From Vitrella brassicaformis CCMP3155 (taxonomy: Eukaryota; Protista; Chromerida), in NCBI GenBank assembly GCA_001179505.1, contig CDMY01000130.1, positions 1-64,000 on the forward strand: DNA of 64,000 bases, read 5' to 3'. This document shows positions 12,482-52,429 of the stretch, in pieces; within the stretch, counting starts at the first letter, position 1; every line of letters begins with the position of its first letter. The position numbers and the translations under genes were made by a program. The notes beneath the pieces are model-generated. The model searched no databases. It had not been told where the DNA came from and saw only the letters and a program-made list of their open reading frames with translations.

Positions 12482-14110
12482 CCTCCCCCATCCTCATCCT
12501 CCGTTCCTTCGTCCGGCACATTTCATCCAGGCGGCAGCTCCCCCTTCTCCCTCGCTGTGAATCTTTCTCTGCTCATCTCTTTCGCTCCTTCCTTCTAGCC
12601 GCCACCGTCCCCCACGACGATGTTTGCTCGCGTCCTTGGGCTCCTGTTCCTCGTGACTCTCACGGTCGGCGCCTCCTCCCCTCTACGCAAACTCGCACCC
12701 GAAGGTGCATATGATGGTGAGCCACGCCACGGTTGCACGCAGATCTGACGTGCCCTCACTATCCTCCTGGTCCTCTCTCTTGTCTTTCCCCAGGTGATTC
12801 CCCCGACGACGAACTCACCACCACTGAAGAGCCGTCTACCACCACTGAAGAGCCGCCCTATGTCCGAACCGCGGGAAAGCCGTCCATTCTGTCAGTGGTC
12901 ACTGAATGCGACCCGACTGACCTGGACTGCATGCCCCTGGCGCCCGGAGGTAAGCGAGCGAAGTCAATTGTGACCATCGAGAAATGGCTTTCTGTCTCTC
13001 CGCTTCTGTGTGCCGTCAGCCGTCCGTTTCATCTCCCCTACAATTCATGTCGCGCAGAACGATTCCAGCATCAGTAAGCAAGCGAAACACTGGCGTCGCG
13101 TGTGTTTCTCATTCTTCGCCGCCACACTCGCTTCCAGGTGAGGCAGGTGCTGCGCGTGTAATTTGCAACGACAGAGACTCAGCCTGCGCTTCGGTAGAGG
13201 GTACGTCATTCCAGAGATTATGTGGTCGCTTGTTGTTCACGCATTGGGTTTCTCTCACTCAGCCCAATTCAAGGCCCGGCAAGTCGCAATAGACAATCCT
13301 CTTAGTCCTGGGGAAGACATCTTTGTGGATCGCTGCAACATAGCAGGGAACTTATTCACTTGCAACAAACCTGCTGCCGACGTGAGAAAAACAAAGCAAG
13401 CGATTTGATGTATTGCGATGCGTTGTGTTTTCCCATTGACAGGAATACTGCAGACAAAAAGTAAAAAATTCCATCACGGCAATATCCTGGTCTGAGTCAA
13501 CTTGCTCAAGAACGTACCATCTCATCGGCGGTACCATCTGCACCTCTTTTCTCGGTTGCTGGTGCTTCGGCTCCATCGATTGCCAGACTGTCTGAACTTG
13601 CTGTCTGACTATGTATGGATGGATGTTCTGGCTGCTGTGGATGGGCTGGATGTGGGTGATCGGCTGACTTGTCACTTTTCCGGCCATGCTGGCCGCGCAC
13701 GAGCGCTCTCCCAGACATGCGAAGCGGGCATGTGTGAGAGGGTCCTCCTCGTGCGCCAGCTGACTGTCATTGACTTTGGATGCACACCTTGCACGCACAC
13801 ATGGACCCTGCGCGCGCCGTCCATTCGTGCGTCTCTGCCGAGTCTGCTTCTTTTGCGCGACGCACACCTGTCCGCCAGCAGCGCACAGGGTCGGGGGAGG
13901 GGGTCATCGCCCGCAGCTTGCCACCCCTCACTGTCTGTTTCTTGCTTTTCCCATGTGTATCTCCTGCCGTGTATGCCATATGTGGTGAGGCCGCGTGCTG
14001 TGTTTTGTGTGGGTGTCTGTCTGTCGGTCTGTCGGTCTGTCCGTCGTACTCGAAAAGGGAGGGACAGGCCGATCGACGAGCTGCCCACTGCACACATGCG
14101 TGGCTGACGC
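12450..14110. repeat. Arm 1 of an inverted segmental duplication (partner ~29065-31118)
   Basis: Long reverse-complement matches in the signal-peptide exon, introns and 3' flank, e.g. 13040-13100 vs ~30480-30560, 13370-13450 vs 30120-30200, 13600-13900 vs 29640-29990, 14010-14110 vs 29470-29570. Confidence 0.9.
12620..13595 (+). CDS. Secreted Cys-rich protein (gene C) with an acidic/Thr-rich linker
   Basis: MFARVLGLLFLVTLTVGASS-PLRKLAPE; about 6 exons; ...ECDPTDLDC...VICNDRDSAC...DRCN...FTCNKPAAD/EYCRQ...TCSR...ICTSFLGCWCFGSIDCQTV*. Exon/intron structure matches 29980-30939. Confidence 0.8.
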
Positions 14111-27951: not shown

Positions 27952-29064
27952 AAGCGACACGAGCATTTGTGTCATGGTGCATTCATTCCTGATGCACTGA
28001 CATTCGTACGTGTCTGTCTGCGTGCTTTTCATGTCTATCAGATGTAATTAGCAGGATCTGACTGCCTCCAGTGGCCTAGAGAGGCGGAGGCAAGCAGTGT
28101 GTTGATGTGAGTGATGGTATTTGTAGGCGTGCCCGTCCGTAGAGCGATGCTTGGGTCCTCTTGTCAGCTGGCCCTTGTGACTGATCGCAATGCATGCGAA
28201 GTGTGCATGTGTAGACTTACGAGTGTGCATGTGTGGTTAGTCAGCCGGGCGCTCGATCAGGTCTCTTTTTCGTCGCATCGATCTCGTGACATACACACGT
28301 GGTGTTTACTCCCAGGCAGGCAGGTGTTTTTGAATCAGTTTCTCTTTCCTCTTGGTGTCACACGCGCTCTCATGGTGGGCTGCTCAGCTATCGGGCGACT
28401 GGTTTGGGAATCCAGTGCGTGTTTTTGCTTTCATGTCTCTCTCTCGGTTTCTTCTTTCATGTCTCTCCCCACATCCATACACTGGAACGGATCTGAATCT
28501 GTCGGTTGTGTCATTTGTCGGATGTCTATCGGCGGACTGGTTCGTGCTTTTGCATTCTTGTCTCTCTCGTGCATGTCGACATGTGCAGCTGCGTTGTACT
28601 GTGTTTTGGTTCTCGCGTCGTGCGTGCCATGCAGTGTCGAAATGTGCCGTCTTGTCGATATGGATGCTGACTGATATATCGAGCGCTGCATTCCTATCGT
28701 ACGACTTTTTCCGCACGAGTCGTGATTGCTCTATGGAAGACGCTCGTGTTGAAGTAGGTGTTGGGCCTCAGCTGACTGACTGATATGGGCGAACAGTCAA
28801 TCAATGCACAGACGAAGGCGTATTCGTTTTGCGTGAATTATGCAGATACATGCCGAGAGGAAGTAACTCACAGGGAATCAATCCAGTGCGACTCACTCAC
28901 ATGTCTCCTCCGTTTTTTGGCATCCGAAAGAACGAAAGGCAGCCAGACAAAGCAGCAGCGCCAACACTATCTACCGCTTGCTTACCGCGCCTTCCCCTGT
29001 GATTTGTCATGCCGATTTCTTGATTGAGCTGGCATCATTACGTGGATACGGTCAAACAGATTCT

Positions 29065-29600
29065 CACACACACAGAATGACGTCAGACACGCATCTGTGC
29101 AGTGGGCAGCCAATCGATCGGCCTGTCCATCCCTTTTCGACGAACCGAGAGACAGACAGACAGACAGACAGCGACCCACACAACACAGCACGTGACCTCA
29201 CGACACATACATAATCCTTCTGCGCTCCAGACCTGGCCCTGCCATGCATGGATTTGTATCGACCGACCGACGGGCGGATGGGTTTAAATTGTTCGTCAAT
29301 GAGTCTCCTGCCTCGACTGTGCATTCATTCATTCATGCGACGATGGTTGTTACTTGCGTCCACGTGTTGTTTATGTTAGTGCTCTCATTCCCATGTCCCC
29401 CTGGTCCCATGTCTCTGTCTCCCCACCTCCCCCCGCGATGGACAAACGGATTCACACACACACGGAATAACGTCAGAGACGCATCTGTGCAGTGGGCAGC
29501 CAGTCGATCGGCCTGTGCATCCCTTTTCGAGTACAATTGACAGACCGACAGACAGCCACCCACACAACACGTGGCCTCACGACAGACGCACACAACACGG
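29065..29600. repeat. Two direct copies (~130-150 bp; ~29065-29215 and ~29465-29600) of a non-coding element also present inverted at ~14000-14110
   Basis: Shared core acgtcaga.acgcatctgtgcagtgggcagcca.tcgatcggcctgt.catcccttttcga followed by (ACAG)n and acccacacaacac. Confidence 0.85.
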
Positions 29601-29979
29601 CACGAGACACGCATGGATAAATCAAGAAACAGACCAGTGAGTGATTGGTGGCAAGCTGCGGGCGATGACCCGCCTCCCCCTCCCCTGTGCGCGGCTGGCG
29701 GACAGGTGTCCGTCGCGCAAAAGAAAGAGATGCACAAATGAAAGCGGTGTGTGCAGGGTCCGAGGTTGTGCGCATGCATTAAAGTCAGTGGAAGTCAGCT
29801 GGCGCGTGAGGAAGTCCCTCCCACACATGCCCGCTTCGCATGTGTGGGAGAGCGCTCGTGCGCGGCCAGCATGGACGCAAAAATGACAAGTCAGCCGATC
29901 ATGCTCATCCAGCCCATCCGCAGCAGGCAGCCAGCCAGAACATCCATACATAGTCAGACAGCAAGTTCAGACAGCAAGT

Positions 29980-30939
29980 TCAGAACTGGCAATCGATCCT
30001 GCTGAAGCAGCCACAGAGATTGAAGCAGAACGAAAAGTCGCCCAGTCGGAAACCTGATGGGCAGATGTCAATTGCAAAGCCGTTGGGAGCTGCCTGGATT
30101 GAACTCGGTATTAATATTCTGCAGAACTCCTGTCAATGGGAAAACACAACGAATCGCAATGCATCAAATCGCTTGCTTTGCTTTCTCACGTCGGCAGCGG
30201 TTTGGCCGCAAGAGCTAAAATCAGGGATGATTCCAGCAAATGGATCTCGGTTGCAAGAATCTATACGCTGCCCTGCGCTTGTGGCGGGGAGGTTGAAAGT
30301 GGGGACCGTTGGAAAGTCGAATTGATTCACTCGGGCTGAGTGAGAGAGAAGCCAATGCGTGAACAACAGGCGACCACATAATTTCTACAATGACGTACCC
30401 GCCATCGAAGCGCAGGCTGAGTCTCCTTCATTGCAAACCACACGCGCAGCACCTGGCCCACCTGGAAGCGTGTGTGGCGGCTCAAGTAAGAAACACGCGA
30501 CGCCAGTGTCTCGCTTGCTTACTGATTCTGGAATCGTTCGTCGCGAGATGAAGTACAGGGGAGATGAAACGGATGGCTGATGGCACACAGAAAAAGAGAC
30601 AGAGAACCAGCTCTCGATTTGACTTCGCTCGCTTACCTCCGGGCGCCAGCGGCAGGCAGTCCAGGTCGGTCGGGTCGCATTCAGCGGTTCGTCCATTGGG
30701 CGGCTCCTCGGTGGTGGTGAGGTCGGCGTCGGGGGAATCACCTGGGAAATATTCGGCGTCGGGAGAATCACCTGGGAAAAGAAAGGACCAGGAGAAGGAG
30801 AGGGCACGTTGCAGATCTGCGTGCAACCGTGGCGTGGCTCACCATCGTCTTCGGGTGCGAGTTTGCGGAGAGGGGAGGGGCCGCCGACCGCGAGAGTCAC
30901 GAGGAACAGGAGCCCAAGGACGCGAGCAAACATCGTCAT
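29980..30939 (-). CDS. Secreted Cys-rich protein (gene D), inverted paralog of gene C
   Basis: MTMFARVLGLLFLVTLAVGGPS-PLRKLAPE...ECDPTDLDC...VVCNEGDSAC...DSCN...SSCGQTAAD/EFCRIL...DICPSG...FCFNLCGCFSRIDCQF*. Confidence 0.8.
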
Positions 30940-50397: not shown

Positions 50398-52429
50398 ATG
50401 ATGAACCGCGGCTCGTTGACCCTTGCCCTGGTGGCTGTTGCACTGTGCTTCGCTGACCTGCCTGCACAGGCCGAACCGGCATCCGGCTCTCATCATGACT
50501 CCACGGTCCGTACGGGGAGTGCGGTGTACATGTATCACCCATCACATCGTATGTGTGTCTTGCTGATGGTGTGCGCGTTTCATGCAGGACACCGCAACTG
50601 ACGAACTGGTTGACGTCGGCATATTGGCGTTCTGTCGCAATGTGCTTGAAGACCCTGCCCAGCCTGGCGAGTATTTCTATGAGCTCAATAATCTGACCCC
50701 CGACCGCCCCAAGCAGCGCGTCTACCTGCCTGATGAAGTCGTCCACGGCAGTGTCAAGTGAGGCCGCAACACAACACAGTTCTGTGTGCCACCAACTGAG
50801 ATCTGTGATGTCTGCCCAGCTTCTACACCACAGACGAGCACGGCCGCAAAACACTATTTCCCAAGGGCGTGGCGCCAGCCGTGCGTCTGGCCGCCTGGGC
50901 ATCCGGCTCTAATGACTCCGCCGTCACTCAAACGGTCGGTACGGGGCGGGCCGTGTATCATCCATCACATCGTATGTGTGTCTTGCTGACGGTGTGCGCG
51001 TGTCACGCAGAGCACCGCAACTGACAAACTGGATGACGTCGGCACGTTGGAGTTCTGTCGCAATGTGCTTGAAGACCCTGCCCAGCCTGGCGAGTATTTC
51101 TATGTGCTCAACAGACTGATCTCCGACCGCCCCGAGGAGCGCGTCTACCTGCCGACCGATATCGCCCGCGCCAGTGTCCATTGTCAGCTAGATCATGTCA
51201 CTGAGCGGCGCTGTCACAATCAATGGCCTGCTGTCTGATTTGTGCTCACACAGTCTACATAACGGACACGAGCGGCCGCACAACAATGTTGAAAAAAGGC
51301 GTGCTGCCAAATGAAGAGACGTACGACGACATTGGCTGCACCAACACACGACGGGCAGACGGGCTCAGATCGATTGTGCTTTGTGTGTGTCGTCTTGTTG
51401 CCAGTGAGGGTGTGGCCAACAAAGGCGGCGTCACTGCACTGCAAGACCGGCAGGACGAGGGCTCATCATCATCATCATCATCATCATCATCGCTCGATGC
51501 CGCCATTCAGAGCCTCCAGAGCCGAGTGAGCGATCTCCAGGGTCTCCAGGAACGAGTGAACAATCTCGAGCAGCAGCTGGCCAAGGTGGGGGCCCTCTCC
51601 AGGGAGGCTGACGGCAATCTCGAGCAGCAGCTGGCCAAGGTTGGGGCGCTGTCCAGGGAGGCTGATGCGATGTTGGGTAAGGGGCTTCTCAGGCTAGGGC
51701 AGAGGGATGCTGAGACCGCTCCGGCCGTTGAGCAGGTCCGTCCATCCACACGGCCAGGCAGGCAGGCAGGCAGGCAGGCAGACAGGGGGTGTGGTGTGTC
51801 ATGCATGCCTGGGTGACATCCATCGTGTCGTGTTGGTTGTGATGCAGGCCTCGTCACTGGCTGCGTCCTTCCATGTCCTGAAAGCGCGAGTGGGAGATCT
51901 GGAACACCAAGTGTCCAACGTCGCGACGTCACTTGGGGAGGTGTACCTCAACAGTCTTTCACTTGGGGACGAGGCGGGTGCTCAGAAGGCCCCTCCGGCT
52001 GGCGAGGGTTATCCTCCGGATGTCAAAGCCACCACCACAACTCCACCACCTCCAACCACCACAACTCCACCACCTCCAACCACCACGGAGCAACCGACGA
52101 CGACCACCGCTGCCACCACTGAGCCGGCAACGACGACTGAGCCACCCACCACAACGGGTATGTCCTAAGCAAGACACTGCTGACTGACACCTGGCTGCTT
52201 GGTGTTTTGCTGGTATCCTGCAGACGAACCTGAGGAGCCTGAGAAGCCCGAAGAGCCCGAGAAGCCTGAGAAGCCCTATAATGAAGACAAGGCGGCCTCA
52301 GGGGGGCTGAGGGGTGCAGTGGAGCCGTCTGCTGTCGCGCACACCATCAATGCGACCTCCTCCTACCTCGAGAGAGCGTACCAGGGCCTCAAGTCGCTCA
52401 AGGCCTACCTGGGCCTGGGTGGCAACTGA
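50398..52429 (+). CDS. Secreted protein: two tandem copies of an unknown ~95-aa domain, a coiled coil, a Thr/Pro mucin tract and a PEK repeat
   Basis: MMNRGSLTLALVAVALCFA; FCRNVLEDPAQPGEYFY.LN.L..DRP..RVYLP x2; NLEQQLAKVGALSREAD x2 (54-bp unit); TTTTPPPP repeats; stop at 52427-52429. Confidence 0.8.

Follow-up and report, generated by a model that had tools for sequence, protein, structure and literature searches.

Genes C and D of Vitrella brassicaformis form a mosaic pair. Their leader exon, introns and 3' flank are closely similar, while the cores of their last two coding exons can hardly be aligned, and the same arrangement, with synonymous and replacement divergence rising together in the last two exons, was found in three neighbouring pairs of one gene family. 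In the reading that we favour, to which we give a probability of about one half, the members of such a pair are old duplicates that were homogenised by gene conversion outside the domain exons, which would have escaped it. Both genes were found in a window of 64,000 nucleotides at the beginning of contig C130, which exact matches of the encoded proteins assign to strain CCMP3155.

C and D have six exons each and constitute a tail-to-tail inverted pair with a spacing of 16 kb. Gene C (CEL93011.1, 213 aa) occupies positions 12620-13595 on the forward strand, and gene D (CEL93019.1) positions 30933-29980 on the reverse strand. Their proteins are unnamed or "uncharacterized" in the databases, and records P0004 and P0005 of a public collection agree with the exon models of C and D. 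Exon 1 (C, 12620-12716; D, 30843-30933) is an in-frame model that carries the start codon and a signal-peptide-like leader. It is 94.5% identical between the genes (Jukes-Cantor K 0.06), and the first 14 residues, Met-Phe-Ala-Arg and then a hydrophobic run, are the same; judged by inspection of this leader, both proteins probably enter the secretory path. Exon 2 (C, 12794-12949; D, 30637-30771) encodes an acidic linker rich in Thr, Glu and Pro and a C-D-P-x4-C motif, and its two copies differ chiefly by indels within the low-complexity linker. Exon 3 (C, 13020-13073; D, 30523-30576) is 54 nt long with phase 1-1 and is kept across the paralogues; a five-exon model without it was ruled out by the family alignment and by an RNA contig. 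Exon 4 (C, 13138-13200; D, 30399-30461) bears a Cys-x7-Cys pair. The first half of the variable domain lies in exon 5 (C, 13263-13381; D, 30190-30335; the C copy is 27 nt shorter), and the second half, with six cysteines in C, lies in exon 6, which includes the stop codon (C, 13443-13595; D, 29980-30129). Between them is intron 5 (C, 13382-13442; D, 30189-30130), which in C has GT..AG ends and is removed in RNA.

The gene models were compared with RNA contigs. A 630-nt spliced contig matched C with 0 differences, contained five GT..AG joints (12716/12794, 12949/13020, 13073/13138, 13200/13263 and 13381/13443) and reached the stop codon at 13595, and both variable exons of C are thus present in mRNA. 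The transcript of D is represented by a second contig, which aligns to C only as far as exon 4. The exon boundaries of D come from the model; exon 3 lies within the D transcript contig, and the letters of exon 2 lie between RNA contig joints. Exon 2 of D contains a 30-nt tandem duplication, which creates two equivalent acceptors, 30771 and 30741; in the D transcript contig the upstream one (30771) is in use, adding ten residues. The letters of D exon 6 were also those of a loose end at 13454 in a metagenome run. The reading frames of C and D are intact.

Downstream of the stop codon, C has a 3' UTR and flank (13596-14109) that is common to D (29979-29471), is covered by RNA contigs and ends at a (GTCT)n repeat. 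Several other repeated elements were observed in this region. The 3' UTR contains an element of about 84 nt that is common to C (13653-13734), D (29842-29928) and the more distant paralogue G (L014, about 1910-1995), with 78-82% identity, and that can form a near-perfect hairpin with the stem CACACATGC / GCATGTGTG. The (GTCT)n-type repeat that closes the block shared by C and D (13975-14045) had very high depth in every run, and in D the final 135 bp or so of the shared block occur in two copies (29050-29186 and 29440-29570, 86% identity). Elsewhere in the window, a direct repeat with no relation to these elements was seen (50531-50755 and 50954-51178; about 225 bp, 88% identity).

Self-BLASTN of the window, with indels counted in the identities, aligned C to D in three blocks: 12582-13265 with 30974-30333 (81%), 13366-13454 with 30204-30118 (92%), and 13588-14109 with 29974-29471 (81%). 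The two intervening stretches of C, 13266-13365 in exon 5 and 13455-13587 in exon 6, gave no alignment to D in this search. Intron 5, which separates these two cores, matched at 57 of 60 sites (95%, K 0.05). Across all introns, K between C and D was 0.05-0.13 (0.06-0.13 for the introns other than intron 5), with 23 mismatches in 311 aligned sites, and in the 515 bp of 3' flank it was 0.12-0.13. A sliding window along the two genes revealed two troughs in which identity fell to 0.2-0.45, with edges no more than about 15 nt from exon or CDS borders. Within the variable core, only 14 of 68 aligned residues were identical (21%), which is among the lowest values of the 28 family pairs, and D was no nearer to C than other paralogues are. 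Even in the most favourable Cys-anchored codon alignment of the two cores, the mismatch at all three codon positions was that of shuffled codons, while the cysteine framework was kept. The contrast between exons 5 and 6 and the introns is therefore real and far beyond chance. The original prediction, made from the DNA letters alone, had described just this: a near-identical intron 5, a conserved leader exon, other introns and several hundred base pairs of 3' flank, and two exons barely alignable save for their cysteines and ends. All of this was confirmed, as were its six-exon numbering and its treatment of exons 5 and 6 as coding exons, and the peptides that it quoted are the true translations.

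Substitution rates were estimated for the coding exons. In exons 3 and 4 together, dN was 0.20 and dS 0.09 between C and D (omega 2.2). In exon 5, dN was 0.73 and dS 1.25, and in exon 6, dN was 0.68 and dS 0.98; these exons are rich in indels and saturated, which makes the codon alignments uncertain, inflates dS and leaves the dN/dS test weak there.

Exons 5 and 6 jointly encode one disulfide-rich domain of 85-90 residues, whose landmarks are Asn-Pro, Asp-x-Cys, Cys-Gly-x-Pro-Ala-Ala-Asp-x-[FY]-Cys and Phe-x2-Ile-x-Cys. When a profile of the last exon from Vitrella was compared with 1.84 billion representative proteins, eight matches were obtained, three of them outside Vitrella (E 5.8e-6 to 5.5e-4). 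These three proteins contain, in tandem, a unit of about 78 residues that matches exons 5 and 6, and we conclude from this match that the two exons build a single domain. A widened profile collected 50 proteins, with E values down to 2.7e-53 and a domain-wise alignment spanning hmm positions 3-80. The named relatives are hypothetical proteins from Oligoflexia, Pseudobdellovibrionaceae and metagenome-assembled genomes (MAGs) of Alphaproteobacteria; by profile matching, the relatives of the domain are distant and mainly bacterial. Those recorded as P0006, P0007, P0008 and P0019-P0022 come mostly from MAGs of predatory or deltaproteobacteria-like organisms and of Alphaproteobacteria and often have two tandem copies. 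P0007 also ends in a hydrophobic C-terminal tail rich in Arg and has a thrombospondin type 3 repeat that scores just below the cut-off of Pfam. The contigs on which the non-Vitrella relatives are encoded were too short to show their gene neighbourhood. This bacterial and environmental domain, with the motif C-G-x-P-A-A-D-A-[FY]-C, is matched by the Vitrella exons over its full length, and the agreement takes in the positions Asn-Pro, Asp-x-Cys, Ala-Ala-Asp-x-[FY]-Cys and Phe-x2-Ile-x-Cys. In contrast to the bacterial proteins, which contain one or two tandem domains, the Vitrella copies have diverged much further, possess one additional Cys pair, and are preceded by a Vitrella-specific leader and the module of exons 2-4.

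A word-based protein search with the domain region of C matched C alone, and no Pfam family was found at E values up to 1 with the exons, the whole proteins or 43 domain segments. Together with the uncharacterized status of the proteins and the Vitrella loci described below, this bears out the claim of an undescribed family. Several candidate assignments were rejected. YecR was a Pfam match only under its cutoff. Two bacterial relatives carry a match to PAN/Apple PF14295 (PAN_4), but their aligned domain segments alone give none, which suggests that PAN_4 lies next to the domain in these proteins. The idea that the module of exons 2-4 is a degenerate half-copy of the domain received an hhalign probability of 10%. 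The AlphaFold model of the C domain was poor and its fold search uninformative when built from 11 rows (pLDDT 60), and was of high score with a 43-row alignment (pLDDT 91.6, pTM 0.82). This second model is an alpha/beta fold made up of strands, a single helix, a long hairpin and, at the end, one more strand. The Atlas's own model matched bacterial hypothetical proteins with TM 0.76-0.83, which is a comparison of models only, and a Foldseek search of the PDB with the pLDDT 91.6 model found nothing. The best structural scores in the PDB were those of the SRCR domains of enteropeptidase and hepsin (Z 4.9, rmsd 3.1 Å, 74 residues). SRCR (PF00530) was nevertheless rejected, with no Pfam match and with a Z of 4.9 that is below the level separating relatives from common arrangements. 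The domain could serve as a binding module that is secreted and stabilised by disulfides.

When the whole assembly (72.7 Mb, 1064 contigs) was searched with baits, first DNA and later exon profiles, at least nine Vitrella loci of this family were detected; profiles were needed to reach the divergent members, and single last exons used as protein queries against the genome each matched only themselves. In addition to C and D, the family has three members on contig C212 (E, H and F, where H is upstream of E at a distance of 3 kb), two on C659 (G and K, separated by 2.4 kb), and single members on C243 (I) and C644 (J). The exon plan and 12 cysteines are common to all members, and so is the layout of a conserved 5' module followed by a hyperdivergent, Cys-framed C-terminal domain. 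Four of the nine members have apparent defects: H has an in-frame TAG in exon 3 (L016, 1076-1129), G has a start ATG out of frame and GA instead of GT as the exon-3 donor (L014, 613-700 and 1120), K has an exon 2b without an acceptor AG (L030, about 1080-1100), and I is free of a stop only if an additional 45-nt intron is assumed (L017, reverse strand, 1166-1344). A weak exon-5-like match with an internal TGA at C485:35350-35418 (L031, E 0.007) may be a tenth, dead member. A relic was observed 475 bp downstream of the stop codon of H (L016, about 2140-2520, on C212), consisting of the last 15 nt or so of an E-like exon 6 and its 3' UTR block, and the spacer between H and E contains several further copies of the same E-like 3' block; these relic blocks point to unequal recombination in the array.

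Two further pairs, E-H and G-K, display the C-D mosaic at what would, by their divergence, be younger ages. Between E and H, K was 0.04-0.17 in the introns, while dS was 0.74-0.89 and dN 0.55-0.59 in exons 5 and 6 (omega 0.66-0.74). Between G and K, the non-coding sequence had 20 mismatches in 462 sites, and one intron was identical at 68 of 68 sites while the adjoining introns differ. In this pair, dS and dN were 0.16 and 0.19 in exon 5 and 0.50 and 0.48 in exon 6, which also has three indels (omega 0.96-1.18 over the two exons), and the ratio of replacement to silent changes in exons 3 and 4 was 5:0. A unique insert is common to both the G and K copies of exon 6, and these copies are thus old diverged sisters rather than swapped cassettes. 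Omega in exons 5 and 6 of C-D was 0.59-0.69, and across the three pairs dS in these exons was 4- to 14-fold higher than divergence in the introns. The original prediction had proposed a diversifying secreted family driven by positive selection or by exon-targeted conversion. The hyperdivergent, Cys-framed domain and, by inspection, the leader agree with such a family, but positive selection was not borne out: synonymous sites are equally raised, and pairwise dN/dS in exons 5 and 6 was 0.6-0.7 in C-D, 0.7 in E-H and about 1 in G-K, the range in which the prediction itself gave up its claim, though saturation weakens the test. Conversion from donor cassettes received no support either: profiles run over the whole assembly found only the family's own full genes.

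Old duplication with gene conversion is favoured because dS and dN rise together in the three pairs and because a simulation with selection only does not reach the observed third positions. C and D would be old duplicates within a Vitrella-specific family, and conversion between close copies would re-homogenise the promoter-proximal part, exons 1-4, the introns and the 3' UTR, while the cores of exons 5 and 6 escape. Escape may have come about in two ways: converted variants could have been selected against, so that diversity of a binding surface was kept, or the cores could already have been too diverged to pair, which is a homology barrier. One of the two must be added to conversion, because neutral tracts would not respect exon or CDS borders; it counts against conversion that each of the four edges of the C-D islands is no more than about 15 nt from such a border, and a further cause is also needed because the islands coincide with the same two exons in the three pairs. 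Non-coding K varies between blocks, and this unevenness and the relic 3' blocks of the H-E array point to repeated recombination. On the other side, the conserved C-D blocks are fairly similar in K, as they would be after one duplication event.

Such similar blocks, and borders of divergence that match exon and CDS borders, would also be expected if C and D had duplicated recently (introns K about 0.05-0.1) and adaptive substitution had then accelerated in the domain exons, as in venom genes. This explanation has a precedent in pairs of snake serum and venom genes (PMC6609765). It is also consistent with the replacement excess in exons 3 and 4 of C-D and G-K, which hints at some positive selection and is not significant. 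In the tree of the variable domain, moreover, C and D are sisters on very long branches with weak support (92/30). The selection-only simulation was started from a duplication dated by the introns (K 0.09-0.13) and tuned to the observed 21% identity of the core. It predicted a third-position mismatch of 0.24-0.30 and the same codon at 87% of identical residues, whereas 0.53 and 57% were observed, and it fell short of the observed third-position divergence at omega values up to 25. Recent duplication would require a domain-wide omega of 10-25, while omega in exons 5 and 6 is at most 1.2 in the three pairs and dS there far exceeds that of the introns. Furthermore, the divergent zone of G-K begins about 20 nt inside intron 5, outside the coding sequence. 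Recent duplication with acceleration is thus a serious but unlikely alternative. Phylogeny provides no proof of the mosaic, because C and D are sisters in the domain tree and because AU tests of the constant against the variable part did not reject congruence (p-AU 0.23 for E+H and 0.18 for C+D+G). GC3 differed little and uninformatively between constant and variable exons, and synonymous differences at family-invariant residues were too few to separate the models.

The equal rise of the three codon positions is what a mutational cause would give, either local hypermutation or patch conversion templated by silent donor cassettes. Yet stand-alone cassettes of exon 5 or exon 6 were found nowhere in the 72.7-Mb assembly, where last-exon and profile searches matched the nine full genes and weak sequences at chance level. 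The 61-nt intron between the two cores has been spared, unlike what transcription-linked mutagenesis would produce. C and D were also unchanged in four runs from 2012 to 2025, including a marine sediment metagenome of 2025, and no allelic variation was seen in them across these runs; since the same sequences recur, the difference between C and D is stable and not somatic. Mutation targeted to the exons is accordingly very improbable.

It is likewise improbable, if not quite to that degree, that the locus is simply old and that purifying selection on regulatory or structural RNA elements has held the introns, UTRs and leader in place. The hairpin element in the 3' UTRs of C, D and G would fit such a constraint, as would the somewhat better preservation of the introns than of the 3' flank. 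But about 1.3 kb would have to be constrained in three separate pairs, and the non-coding DNA is alike within each pair only, not across the family. The intron of G-K that is fully identical beside differing introns looks rather like recent copying. The least probable explanation is that one copy is under relaxed constraint or is decaying as a pseudogene. Defects do exist in H, G and K; the frames of C and D, however, are intact, splicing is seen for C and transcription for D, all 12 of 12 cysteines are kept, and neutral decay cannot outrun the divergence of the flanking introns.

Under old duplication with conversion, Vitrella would have a small family of its own in which a secreted repertoire diversifies in one domain and the rest of the gene is kept uniform. 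The pairs G-K, E-H and C-D offer three natural replicates of different age, which make the process datable, and a domain without a name, so far mostly bacterial, is put on the map. A more speculative reading, which we regard as quite doubtful, is that these proteins are a panel of secreted recognition proteins whose binding domain is held or driven apart between neighbours while conversion standardises the rest. If it were true, the alga would have taken its own route to a diversified repertoire of extracellular recognition, directed to bacteria, the coral host or mating partners, from a mostly bacterial domain. Among photosynthetic organisms, chromerids are the most closely related to apicomplexan parasites, in which interaction with the host depends centrally on extracellular recognition proteins.

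The pattern was compared with known systems. In conopeptide precursor genes, the signal and introns are conserved, the mature toxin of 10-40 residues is hypervariable, and synonymous sites are raised too. The likeness to conotoxins seen by the original prediction holds for the gene layout, in which a hyperdivergent coding region framed by cysteines is surrounded by a leader exon and introns that are conserved. It does not extend to the product: the variable part in Vitrella is not a short peptide, but a domain of 85-90 residues, predicted to be folded, that is spread over two exons and has bacterial relatives. Omega in the variable region is not above 1, with the test weak in the saturated C-D pair, no dibasic site or other evident propeptide cleavage was seen before the variable domain, and Vitrella is a free-living, coral-associated alga without a venom context. 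In snake venom PLA2 and small serum protein genes, introns of young duplicate pairs (KN 0.05-0.065) are far better kept than coding exons (KA/KS 1.5-1.7), and the arrays include an inverted segment, as in Vitrella (PMC6609765). The Vitrella pairs differ in their omega of 0.6-1.2 and in a far deeper divergence, C-D being saturated. In MHC class I and II genes, recombination and conversion homogenise the introns, and the ligand-binding exons are anciently divergent under balancing selection. Homogenised introns and flanks beside old divergent exons are what we favour for Vitrella, with the difference that the MHC concerns alleles and Vitrella neighbouring paralogues. The Vitrella genome paper noted chromerid-specific extracellular proteins and did not use the terms "gene conversion" or "hypervariable" (PMC4501334). 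The Vitrella protein lies outside the conopeptide, snake venom and MHC families and belongs to an undescribed domain family.
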